DNA of 64,000 nt, taken from the NCBI GenBank assembly GCA_965112735.1, contig OZ218955.1:2976001-3040000 (forward strand), given 5' to 3'. The DNA comes from Phaeosaccion multiseriatum. Its lineage: Eukaryota > Protista > Ochrophyta, other classes. The notes beneath the pieces are model-generated. The model did no database searches and was not told where the DNA came from. It saw nothing but the letters and a program-made list of their open reading frames with translations. Positions 1,289 to 10,407 of this stretch are shown here, one piece after another; positions within the stretch are counted from its first letter, which is position 1, and the number at the start of each line of letters is the position of its first letter. A program made the translations under genes and the position numbers.

Positions 1289-4200
1289 ATGGCGCTTCAT
1301 CCGCCCGTCCATCTCTCTCCTCTTCACATCCTTCTCCCTTCTTGTGTGCTGCTTGTAAGGAGCCTTCTATGTCTCTCAGTGCTGAGGAGAGGATAGTCTA
1401 ACAAGACAGAGCCACAAGCGGCGCTCGAGCGGGGTCTTCTCCATCAAAAGCGCGGGCTTTAGCGAGGGTCTCAGGGGATCTGCCTGCCTGTGCTTGTGCT
1501 GCAGCTGCTGCTGCTTTCTGGAATGGCACGGGAGAAGAAGCGTGGTAAGGAGCGTAGCAGCTGGACCCGAGATGACCTACCACTAATAGAGGAGAGGGAG
1601 GAGGAGGTGGTGGAGATCGAGATGGAGCAGCTCTCGGGCTATGACCAAGATCAACCAGCGGGTGGGGAGGAGGGGGGGGGTCAGGAGGAGGACGAGGTGC
1701 GCCTGGAGACAGAAGACCTACCCTTTCTCCTTCGGAATGTGACATGCAGTCAGTGGCGGTCGTGCACCTCCTGCGTCGCGCTGAGATGGGACGGTAATGA
1801 TAATGATCGCCACGAAGGAGAGGAGGGGGGAGAGGGGAGGCAGGGCAAGGTATCACTACACGGAGGACCACAGCAGCAGCAGCAGCAGCAGCAGCAGCAG
1901 CAGCAGCGGTACGAAGACTCCACCCCGCTCTGCCGATGGTGCACCAACCCGGTGAACGATGCCTTCTCCGTGTGCGTGCCCCGAGGAGACAAGGACGGCG
2001 TGTGCGCGTCGGGCTACCTATTGGATTCGTGCGGTACGGGTTACTCGTCCTATCTCTTCGCGCTGGTCATGTCTACGGCGATCTTCTGCTGCTGCGGGAT
2101 GATCATGCTCAAGAGGTTCCTTCAGGCGTGGGGCTACAGGTGGGTGTGGGTGGGTGGGTGGGAGAAGAGAGAGGGAGGGAGGAGTGAGAGAGGGCGGGGG
2201 GAGGGGGAGGAAGGAGAAGGGAGGGAGTTGGGGACAAGGAGGGGGGAGGGGGGGGGTGCGAGCAATACACCCAGCGCGATCGAATCAACAAGAGTCCGTG
2301 TGTCACATGACACCAATTTTTATCCTAAGCAAAGCACACGTTGCTCTTGTCTTCCTCTTGCTCTCCCCGCCTCTCGACCCACCATAACGTCCCTACTGGG
2401 AAACCTACTTGATACTAATACTTACCCCTTCAATCCATGCTGTCCACCACTCACTCACTCACTCACCAATCACACACATGAAATGCATCACCACATTACA
2501 CACATGACAACAAGGACCGGCAGGGGCACCGACTTCGATGAAGAGCTCAACAGGCCGCTGTTGGGGGGGGCGGGGGGCCCAGAAGAGAGCGCCGCCGCGG
2601 ACAGCCAACACGAGAGGGTGTTTCGCAATAGGTGAGAGTGGGGGACATGAGGTACAGTATGTGCCAGTTGTGAGTTGGACTTGTTGTGCCAGTTGTGAGT
2701 TGTGAGTTGTGAGGATATAGACACGACCACAAGTTTGGGGGTGACGGGTATTTGTTATTTATATTTATACGGGCATGTAGGCTAATTGGTGATATATAAT
2801 ATATGTAGATATACGGGCATGTAGGCTAGTTGGTGAGGTGGTGATAATGAGGTGTGAGGAAGAACCTCTTTGTTCTCGTGTCTCGTCACAAAGCAAGGGT
2901 TGGATTCGACCCTCCTTAGCCTCCGGACTGACTATCTTGACTGGCACTTGAAACTGATGAAACTGTTTTCTTTGAACGTGTTTGGTACCAGTCTGGCCAT
3001 CGAGGGGGAGCAGGTGTGGCCCTGCCCCGTGTGTAACTTTGACAACAGGCCGCGTACGGAGGTGTGCGACCTCTGTGGCACGAGCAAGGTGAGGGAGGGA
3101 GGGAGGGACGTGGAGGGAGGGGGGAGGGATGGAGGGAAGGAGGGAGGGAGGGAGGGAGGGAGGGAGGGAGGGAGGGAGGGAGGGAGGGAGGGAGGGAGTG
3201 AAAGCGAGGGGGTAGGGGAAGGAATGAGTTGCGAAAAGGGTATCGTGTAAGAGAGTGAGAGAGCAAAGATGCCACACCGCTTTGTCCGGGCATCACGCAC
3301 ACGTCTCGTCAACCCTCGTTAACCCTCGTTAACCCTCGTTAACCCCTTCCTTCCTATCCCCCTGTCTTCATTTCCCCTTCCCTTCGCAGGGCTTTGCCAT
3401 CGCCTACCAGAGGAGCCTCCGAGAGAAGAGCATGAGCGAGCAGCAGCAGAGGAAGAGGGGTCGCAGCAAGAAGAAGGGGAGGGCAGAGGTGCTCACTCTC
3501 AATGTAGGGAGGGGACAACAAAGAGGGAGAGGAGGAGGAGGAGGAGGAGGAGGAGGAGGAGGAGGAGGAGGAGGAGGAGGAGGGCCAGCAGCGGAGGCCC
3601 AGACTATGCTAACAAGGGAAAGGAGGACGTCGTTGACGAGTGCACTCGTTACCACCTCTTCCTCTGCCTCTCCCTCCTCCTCTTCCTCTTCCTCGCCGGT
3701 ACACTCTAGCCCAAGTGGAGGAAGTGGTGGTGGTGGTGTGGACTTGGAGCGAGGAGAGGGCGGGACCGGCGCAGGGGAGGGGGACGAGCAGGAGGGGGGG
3801 CGGGGCCGAGGGGGTGCGACGGGGGCGGTGGAGGAAGGGAGGGGAGAAGGAGCGCGAGGGGGGGAGACGAGCGAGGCGGAGGCGGAGACATCGGATGACG
3901 AGGAGCGCCGCCTGTTGTCTCCGGCGGCGGCAGCAGCAGCAGCAGCAGCAGCAGTTGATGATACAGCAGCAGCGGAGGAGCATCGACGGGAGTGGCGGCT
4001 CATGTCTCGCTTGCAGCATGGACCGCCGCCCGGCTCCGGCACGGGAGGCAGGAGGGGCTCCATACAAGGGCAGCAGTTGGTGATACAGCAAGAGGAGGAT
4101 GAAGATTTCCGAGTCGAGGAGGAGGAGGAAACGGCGGAGGCACGGGCGGCGCGGCTGATGCAGAATAGGGGCGTGTCTGATGAGATCAGTGCAGCGGTGG

Positions 4201-10200: not shown

Positions 10201-10407
10201 TCCCTCATGCCGCCCCCCCACCCACCTTCCCTTCCCACACACACGCACACAACACGCACGCACACACACACGCACACACATGCACAAATGTACCCGTTAG
10301 CGTGCTTCAACCGCGTGGACCTGCCCTTGTACGAGAGCAAGAGGGAGTTGGCCCAGTACCTCACCGTCGTTGTCAACATCGACGTTACGGGATTCAGCAT
10401 GGACTAG
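1289..10407 (+). CDS. HECT-type E3 ubiquitin ligase with N-terminal hydrophobic segment, Cys-rich PSI-like region, transmembrane helix and RanBP2-type zinc finger. Proposed exons 1289-1354, 1475-2139, 2515-2631, 2992-3088, 3390-4298, 4614-5234, 5594-6127, 6336-6470, 6997-7164, 7714-7804, 8239-8377, 8723-8822, 9182-9271, 9548-9729, 10012-10037, 10301-10407
   Basis: Phase-compatible GT-AG splicing restores the HECT motifs [68 protein letters not shown] and the catalytic PRAH|TCFNRVDLP. Zinc finger WPCPVCNFDNRPRTEVCDLCG at ~3016-3080; TM YLFALVMSTAIFCCCGMIML at ~2051-2110. The first two exons are less certain than the HECT part. Confidence 0.88.
5399..5571. repeat. Long (CA)n microsatellite in an intron
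   Basis: About 170 bp of nearly pure CA. Confidence 0.95.
6580..6990. repeat. Degenerate (CCT)n tract in an intron
   Basis: About 400 bp of CCT/CCCT repeats upstream of the 6997 acceptor. Confidence 0.95.
8826..8906. repeat. 23-bp minisatellite (cgtgggtagtaagtcaatggNtg x~3.5) beginning at a splice donor
   Basis: Direct tandem units immediately after the exon end at 8822. Confidence 0.9.
9813..9923. repeat. Perfect 21-bp minisatellite (ccttctcacaacgtcatctgt x5) in a HECT-gene intron
   Basis: Five identical adjacent units with no spacers. Confidence 0.95.

Follow-up and report, generated by a model that had tools for sequence, protein, structure and literature searches.

A probable membrane-anchored HECT-type ubiquitin ligase with a small cysteine-rich outer domain in Phaeosaccion multiseriatum

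Structure of the gene and its cytosolic domains

The stretch of DNA analysed here (the window) comprises 64,000 nucleotides of the genome of the ochrophyte Phaeosaccion multiseriatum (67 Mb, 22 contigs), corresponding to positions 2,976,001-3,040,000 of contig OZ218955.1, and coordinates given without a contig or locus name refer to it. The plus strand from 1289 to 10407 carries what we regard with high confidence as a single gene with about 15 exons and a predicted product of about 1,440 residues. The product is very probably a HECT-type ubiquitin ligase with a single membrane helix and a small Cys-rich outer domain. Splice sites were assigned by eye from the sequence, the phases of the junctions were verified by script, and profile scans, searches and fold predictions were run exon by exon. 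In the script check, all 14 junctions were GT-AG and frame-compatible, and none of the 15 exons contained an internal stop (Table 1). The coding sequence totals 4332 nt, that is, 1443 codons and a stop; it is three codons shorter with the 2524 acceptor of exon 3. Both acceptors of exon 3, 2515 and 2524, are in frame, and the latter matches the spacing from an invariant Trp to the RPLL motif in the relatives described below. The acceptor of exon 6 is uncertain, as the low-complexity sequence at 5594-5972 offers many in-frame alternative AG sites.

Exons 8 to 15 (6997-10407) tile the HECT profile PF00632 in order from position 12 to position 305, so that the HECT domain is complete. Exon 10, exon 13 and the open frame around exon 10 each scored above 23.9 bits against this profile on their own. 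The codon of the catalytic Cys lies at 10303-10305, 33 residues before the C-terminus. The chain ends in GFSMD before the stop codon at 10405-10407, with Phe at position -4 (10393-10395), as in Nedd4-type ligases. Exons 14 and 15 together rebuild FPRAH-T-CFNRVDLPLY; the canonical AHTCFN loop re-forms across the GT-AG junctions of exon 14 (phases 2 to 1). At microexon 14, two introns split this catalytic AH-T-CFN loop. The solved structures nearest to the exons and to the HECT domain of an ortholog were Rsp5, NEDD4, NEDD4L and SMURF1/2, followed by WWP/Itch, HUWE1/TOM1 and HACE1; the best solved matches were NEDD4L and NEDD4 for exon 8, and Rsp5 and SMURF2 for exon 13. A Pfam scan of all exons and open frames of the gene found neither a C2 nor a WW domain. 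The original prediction, which was made from the nucleotide sequence of the window, had described a Nedd4-like HECT domain lacking C2 and WW domains, and this description held.

The HECT repertoire of the genome is large: HECT-profile exon matches number at least 44 and fall on at least 13 contigs. The genome also carries polyubiquitin arrays built of head-to-tail 228-nt units (C11:1650566-1653781, C11:1716911-1719178 and C5:3279446-3280573), all with identical Pfam scores.

Upstream of the HECT exons, exon 4 encodes the zinc finger WPCPVCNFDNRPRTEVCDLC (3017-3076), which agrees exactly with the RanBP2 consensus W-x-C-x2-C-x3-N-x6-C-x2-C. This exon alone scored 27.3 bits against PF00641 (cut-off 27, E = 2.1e-6), and the finger was also matched in tblastn (3014-3088) by the protein of Chrysoparadoxa described below. 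An NZF finger is defined by Trp, four Cys, Asn, Thr-Phe/Tyr and a hydrophobic residue in the second CxxC (PMC11372445). The Thr of this definition is absent, the corresponding pair being Asn-Phe in the window and Ser-Phe, Trp-Phe, Gly-Phe or Tyr-Phe in the relatives; the window and the relatives all keep the Phe, and likewise the Leu of C-D-L-C. Because the Thr is replaced and the Phe and Leu are kept, the finger was classed as RanBP2-type. The RanBP2/NZF assignment of the original prediction is thereby narrowed to its first half. Ubiquitin binding by the finger is possible, though not supported.

The finger is separated from the HECT domain mainly by exon 5, in which a Pfam scan found no family. 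Three conserved spots stand out in its low-complexity sequence: GFAIAY immediately after the finger, LTERQKRARRRRMWRR (4713-4760), which is the basic motif pointed out in the original prediction, and DSFGDD..SPGFYSTF..GWEEA (5085-5234). These motifs are common to the Chrysoparadoxa protein and to the metagenome contig L009. Antisense to exon 5 lies a Pro/Ser/Leu-rich open frame of 572 residues without a Pfam family (3404-5122, minus strand), which most likely arises from the purine-rich, low-complexity makeup of the coding strand.

At the other end of the gene, the predicted hydrophobic N-terminus was recovered: MALHPPVHLSPLHILLPSCVLL, encoded by the putative exon 1, continues as LLLLSGMA at 1505. 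The donor of exon 1, GTAAGG at 1355, is in frame with the acceptor CTTGTGCTGCAG ending at 1504, and this strong pyrimidine-rich acceptor lies just upstream of ATG 1523. The frame of exon 2 is closed by a stop at 1460; therefore, translation must begin at ATG 1523 or else in an exon farther upstream. The end of exon 1 (..HILLPSCVLL) and the start of exon 2 (LLLLSGMA|REKK) form a hydrophobic core with small residues at -3/-1. From these features a cleaved signal peptide encoded by exons 1 and 2 is plausible, and a signal-anchor (type III) insertion would yield the same topology.

The GC (guanine plus cytosine) content is about 0.6, and the introns are rich in GGGAGG, CA and CCT repeats. Intron 5 contains a (CA)n run of about 180 bp (5395-5575), intron 7 a CCT/CCG-type triplet run of about 430 bp (6560-6995), and intron 13 five tandem copies of the 23-bp unit tctcacaacgtcatctgtccttc (9815-9925).

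Table 1. Exons of the gene and tracts of ordered matches to the Chrysoparadoxa protein
Feature	Location	Strand	Content
Exon 1 (putative)	1289-1354	+	Start codon and first part of the signal-peptide-like stretch MALHPPVHLSPLHILLPSCVLL; uncertain
Exon 2	1505-2139	+	LLLLSGMA, acidic region, sequon, eight-Cys module, transmembrane helix with CCC, basic KR stop-transfer residues
Exon 3	2515 or 2524-2631	+	Cytosolic juxtamembrane tail, DEELNRPLL (2537-2563), VFRN
Exon 4	2992-3088	+	RanBP2-type zinc finger, core 3017-3076
Exon 5	3390-5234	+	615-codon open frame, mainly low-complexity linker
Exon 6	5594-6127	+	Low-complexity start, then family-specific pre-HECT block KPFWQKHVWLLDALKLLQAPHGAGMEAMKIEVQRNNLLADSFTQ (5996-6127)
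Exon 7	6336-6470	+	Start of HECT N-lobe
Exon 8	6997-7164	+	HECT, PF00632 positions 12-67
Exon 9	7714-7804	+	HECT, PF00632 positions 71-97
Exon 10	8239-8377	+	HECT, PF00632 positions 105-145, E = 2.4e-9
Exon 11	8723-8822	+	HECT, PF00632 positions 150-180
Exon 12	9182-9271	+	HECT, PF00632 positions 182-211
Exon 13	9548-9729	+	HECT C-lobe, PF00632 positions 211-261, E = 2.6e-14
Exon 14	10012-10037	+	26-nt microexon: ESFFPRAH and first base of the Thr preceding the catalytic Cys
Exon 15	10301-10407	+	Catalytic Cys in TCFNRVDLPLY, Phe at -4, stop; PF00632 positions 274-305
Ordered tblastn matches of P0002	Window 1928-9727		
Ordered tblastn matches of P0002	Metagenome contig L009 10202-14678		Contig ends inside the HECT region
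Ordered tblastn matches of P0002	Discosporangium contig L010 10460-15592		Contig ends at the pre-HECT block

Relatives and the continuity of the chain

A search of 1.84 billion representative proteins with exon 2, which encodes the PSI-like module and the transmembrane (TM) helix, generated five matches, four of which were true relatives; the fifth, a bacterial PKD-repeat protein, was discarded as spurious. The four relatives were a protein of Chrysoparadoxa australica (P0002, CAM9207238.1, 941 residues, annotated as "unnamed protein product"), partial models from the brown algae Discosporangium and Choristocarpus (P0003 and P0004, 262 and 259 residues) and a protein from a metagenome contig (P0001). 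Wherever a family member has a database name, it is that of an unnamed or hypothetical product. Besides the window, the same motifs occurred in the same order in four other genomes.

The Chrysoparadoxa protein contains the whole arrangement in one chain. Its N-terminal part comprises the eight-Cys module, a TM helix with CCC, DLNRPLLEEDEG..VF and the finger WKCPICSFGNRHSSSQCDLCGTCK, and the same chain continues with LTERQKKARRRGLWQ (the LTERQK motif), DSFGDEGMESSSPGYFSSF..WEEAG, PFWQKHVWLLD and a full HECT domain (Pfam E = 1.6e-72, 245 bits), with no WW domain in the protein. The pre-HECT block of exon 6 is 64% identical to its residues 526-583 and exon 7 is 76% identical to its residues 582-627; identity across the HECT region is 55-76%. 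The two brown-algal models cover the chain from the Cys-rich module through the TM helix, RPLL and VFRNS to the zinc finger and DFAEAY. The metagenome protein joins the Cys-rich module, the TM helix and RPLL; its N-terminus is hydrophobic and shares one open frame with the Cys-rich module. The annotated start of the Chrysoparadoxa protein lies only four residues before Cys1, and a 5' truncation of the model is possible.

The genomic sequences themselves also link the parts. When the Chrysoparadoxa protein was used as a tblastn query, ordered matches were obtained in the window, in the metagenome contig and in a Discosporangium contig (Table 1). At the Chrysoparadoxa locus (L012 4063-4749), a single open frame contains CTWC, the TM helix, NRPLL, the zinc finger and SAY. 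In L009, one open frame extends from the start of the Cys module to RPLL, and another contains QRQK and SPGF. In the window, the open frame of exon 5 alone connects the AY motif after the finger, LTERQK and the DSFGD block before the HECT domain, and the junction CDLCGTSK|GFAIAY (3088|3390) mirrors CDLCGTCKSFASAY, which is contiguous in one Chrysoparadoxa open frame. The one-chain architecture put forward in the original prediction is thus upheld by conserved DNA order, by an annotated single-chain relative and by linking open frames in the relatives.

Further searches did not enlarge the family. For paralogs of exon 2, a search of the P. multiseriatum genome gave only low-complexity matches with E values of at least 1e-3. 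Word-based protein searches with the exon 2 frame, residues 1-175 of P0002 and the family alignment, which are restricted by length limits and low-complexity words, found no further member. Two metagenome scans, one with the family alignment and one with the degenerate pattern QKHxWLLDxLxxLQ, found nothing, and two ESM Atlas look-ups returned only leads below a useful score and zinc-ribbon look-alikes. The family is small: apart from this genome, members were found only in Chrysoparadoxa, in two early-branching brown algae and in one metagenome contig; by these matches, the closest relatives of the gene are ochrophyte (stramenopile) algae.

Cysteine-rich module, membrane helix and topology

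The eight Cys of the module lie at 1745-2032 (CSQWRSCTSC...CRWC...C...C...C), spaced C-x5-C-x2-C-x52-C-x-W-C-x10-C-x9-C-x8-C. Exon 2 also encodes an acidic stretch and an N-V-T sequon (1736-1744) before Cys1, and an N-x-S/T sequon precedes Cys1 in four of the five sequences compared (the window and the four relatives). Residues invariant in all five, numbered on the translation of window 1733-2137, are C5, C11, C14, C67, W69, C70, C81, C91, C100, S106, Y107, C119-121 and W133. The loop between Cys3 and Cys4 in the window holds an acidic/poly-Gln insert of about 40 residues. A small intron in this loop with its donor at 1793 would be in phase 1, incompatible with the phase-0 CAG acceptors, and an in-frame intron at 1850-1906 would measure only 57 nt versus 150-550 nt for the other introns and was rejected as unlikely. 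As both options were rejected, the insert was taken as coding. In the Chrysoparadoxa ortholog (L012 4057-4135), an intron lies in the Cys3-Cys4 loop, the loop that holds the insert in the window.

The eight-Cys spacing with C-x-W-C fits the pattern of the PSI domain. The module resembles PSI (PF01437) in its eight Cys, in the order C-x5-C-x2-C-xn-C-x-W-C-xn-C-xn-C-xn-C, in its predicted extracytosolic position and in adjoining a TM helix; it differs in the insert of the window, and no family member reaches the Pfam cut-off. PSI was the top Pfam family for the Choristocarpus model, at 21.6 bits versus a cut-off of 23.1, and was among the listed, sub-threshold matches of the Discosporangium model (13.4 bits) and the metagenome protein (10.8 bits). 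The module seems best called PSI-like.

The hydrophobic helix YSSYLFALVMSTAIFCCCGMIML follows at 2042-2110. Its best 19-residue Kyte-Doolittle window reached 2.37 (2054-2110), and no other part of the whole model generated a window of 1.6 or higher. AlphaFold2 also placed a helix at residues 102-134, with a predicted local distance difference test (pLDDT) score of 94-96. Basic residues (KR/RR) stand right after the helix, a cue to topology. The helix had been described as ending in CCC; the helix was confirmed, and the CCC (2087-2095) was found inside it, toward the cytosolic end, and not at the very end. The half of the helix nearer the cytosol carries a CCC(C)G cluster that does not vary in the family and is a candidate S-acylation site.

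Both the HECT domain and the zinc finger need a cytosolic location to meet E2~ubiquitin. Since the model contains one TM helix, the Cys-rich domain would have to face the lumen or the outside of the cell. The invariant Cys and the sequon before Cys1 would fit an extracytosolic location of this domain.

On the cytosolic side, exon 3 was aligned to DLNRPLLEEDEGSHEAVF and ELARPLLGDEEE..VFRNS of the relatives. The family motif next to the membrane is L-x-[RQ]-P-L-L followed by acidic residues, and is represented by DEELNRPLL in the window. This stretch, previously described as an acidic dileucine-like motif, is present but non-canonical, conforming neither to [DE]xxxL[LI] nor to DxxLL, and a role in sorting is a guess.

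Proposed protein, alternative explanations and known systems

Taken as a whole, the locus is best explained as encoding a membrane-anchored HECT ligase with a Cys-rich ectodomain, an explanation that we consider probable. The protein would span the membrane once, with its N-terminus outside the cytosol. After an N-glycosylation sequon, a disulfide-rich, PSI-like ectodomain would lead into the TM helix with its CCC as a candidate for acylation, and the cytosolic side would carry the LxRPLL/acidic motif, the RanBP2 finger, a long disordered linker in which two short motifs are conserved, and the Nedd4/Rsp5-type HECT domain. An anchor built into the chain would stand in for the C2 domain and the adaptors that bring Nedd4 ligases to membranes. 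The targets of the enzyme would then be itself and nearby membrane proteins of the secretory or endocytic system, and the zinc finger may assist in holding ubiquitin or a partner.

Several observations weigh against this explanation, some of them touching the continuity of the chain. The step from the DSFGD exon to the pre-HECT block (PFWQKH) crosses an intron in every genome examined, and support for this join comes from the conserved order, the matching phase and what is annotated in Chrysoparadoxa. That annotation is an automatic one and stems from a project that used RNA sequencing in gene prediction. Four public runs from one sample span the introns, identifying them as DNA, and contain no splice evidence; the joints listed in contigs of these runs were rejected as repeat artefacts. 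The function, moreover, has been read from the domains alone. Two adjacent genes in conserved order, one for a Cys-rich/TM/finger protein of about 250-300 residues and one for a soluble HECT protein starting in or after exon 5, would accommodate the missing splice evidence, together with an in-frame ATG at 3432 and the end of both brown-algal annotations shortly past the finger, although both models are flagged as partial. We consider such a pair very unlikely, given that the Chrysoparadoxa annotation holds everything in one chain, that the counterpart of the 3088|3390 junction is contiguous there, that no in-frame stop follows the finger exon unless the intron is retained, and that three genomes share LTERQK and DSFGD in the stretch from the finger to the HECT domain. 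It seems more improbable still that the locus is a decaying or unexpressed copy whose integrity is only apparent. Low complexity alone can keep frames open, and exon 5 and its reverse strand do both contain long open frames (608 and 572 residues). Against decay stand the intact PSI-TM region, finger, ten HECT exons and 26-nt microexon, their correct phases, the retained catalytic residues and the identity to the Chrysoparadoxa protein across the HECT region.

Other points concern the outer domain and the start of the protein. They would suit a single gene whose module is not an extracellular PSI domain but another disulfide or metal knot, with a type III signal-anchor, a non-coding exon 1 and a start at ATG 1523; this alternative is somewhat unlikely. 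The ectodomain of the window generated no Pfam PSI match, and a PSI profile scan of the genome did not pick up exon 2. The ectodomain alignment, searched as a profile against solved structures, returned nothing at E values up to 10. When aligned by hhalign with a PSI domain of the same genome (L013), Cys1-Cys5 were paired, a point in favour of PSI, but only this first half was covered, with a probability of 14%. Two AlphaFold2 runs on the ectodomain and TM helix gave mean pLDDT values of 59.1 and 58.5, with about 50 outside the helix, so that only the helix was confident. Hence, of the PSI-like module in the original prediction, the eight Cys and C-x-W-C are present, and the PSI fold is putative. 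As for the start, the Chrysoparadoxa and Discosporangium models begin without an obvious signal peptide, and two ATGs out of frame with the proposed start at 1289 stand before it, at 1251 and 1279; they may represent upstream open reading frames, or the transcript may begin downstream of both. The ATG at 1279 is flanked by A (-3) and G (+4). An extracytosolic PSI-like domain behind a signal sequence is nevertheless favoured by the Cys spacing, by the appearance of PSI among the Pfam families of three relatives, by the strong acceptor before an in-frame Leu run upstream of ATG 1523, and by the hydrophobic N-terminus in frame with the Cys-rich module in the metagenome relative.

The membrane-anchored ligase may also be thought of as a receptor, in which the binding of a ligand to the PSI-like ectodomain at the cell surface, or the clustering of this ectodomain, would switch the HECT domain on or off. 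It would then be a HECT counterpart of the RNF43/ZNRF3-type ligases, independently evolved in ochrophytes near the origin of brown algae. We regard this extension as unlikely, and a receptor function, like the sensing of ligand or cargo suggested in the original prediction, as speculation.

HECT ligases usually reach membranes by lipid-binding domains or adaptor proteins. The Nedd4/Rsp5-type ligases, which form class VI of HECT ligases (Grau-Bove et al. 2013, PMC3673628), are the most similar to the present gene in the HECT domain, in the catalytic Cys about 33 residues from the C-terminus, in the Phe at -4 and in a probable action on membrane proteins. They differ from it in that the gene lacks C2 and WW domains and has an integral TM helix and an ectodomain in place of lipid binding and PY-motif adaptors. 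A second point of reference is HECTHe4, a heterokont-specific group loosely tied to the Nedd4-like group, with zf-RanBP in its Phytophthora infestans members (PMC3673628). The gene shares with HECTHe4 the stramenopile lineage, a RanBP2-type finger N-terminal to the HECT domain and the loose Nedd4-like link, and may belong to it; no TM helix or PSI domain is mentioned in the description of HECTHe4 (PMC3673628). The original prediction had tentatively pointed to similar TM/zinc-finger HECT proteins in oomycetes. The search of representative proteins with exon 2 found no oomycete protein; zf-RanBP HECT proteins are, however, reported in P. infestans (PMC3673628).

The statement that classical HECT ligases are soluble proved too broad. 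PfUT, a HECT protein of Plasmodium falciparum of 3893 residues with an armadillo-like fold, has four predicted TM domains and is located in the endoplasmic reticulum/Golgi (PMC4022464). As PfUT is an integral-membrane HECT ligase, like the proposed protein, membrane-embedded HECT ligases are not unprecedented. It is unlike the present gene in its four TM domains, in having neither a PSI-like ectodomain nor a zinc finger, and in belonging to another HECT subfamily. Full-text literature searches on transmembrane HECT and on HECT combined with a PSI domain found nothing relevant, and the architecture was not described there. The nearest analogues in design are the PA-TM-RING ligases (RNF43/ZNRF3, RNF13 and plant RMR), in which a small ectodomain and one TM helix are followed by a cytosolic E3 domain that ubiquitinates membrane neighbours. 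They share the layout of the gene and differ in using a RING, which scaffolds the E2, and a PA ectodomain, versus a thioester-forming HECT domain and a PSI-like ectodomain.

In the present gene, ectodomain, membrane anchor and catalytic HECT domain appear to form one protein. If true, this would provide a HECT example of the "ectodomain-TM-E3" design, so far represented mainly by RING ligases, and a simple system for a thioester-forming E3 fixed to the membrane. Describing the family would help to annotate stramenopile genomes better and might be relevant to cell-surface signalling in the ancestry of brown algae.

Downstream, the gene is followed by a convergent gene (10971-12706, minus strand) that looks like RAD50/SbcC. 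Its open frame at 11557-12225 (minus strand) matched PF13558 (SbcC_Walker_B) below the cut-off (E = 2.7e-4), and the minus-strand open frames beside it look like further exons.

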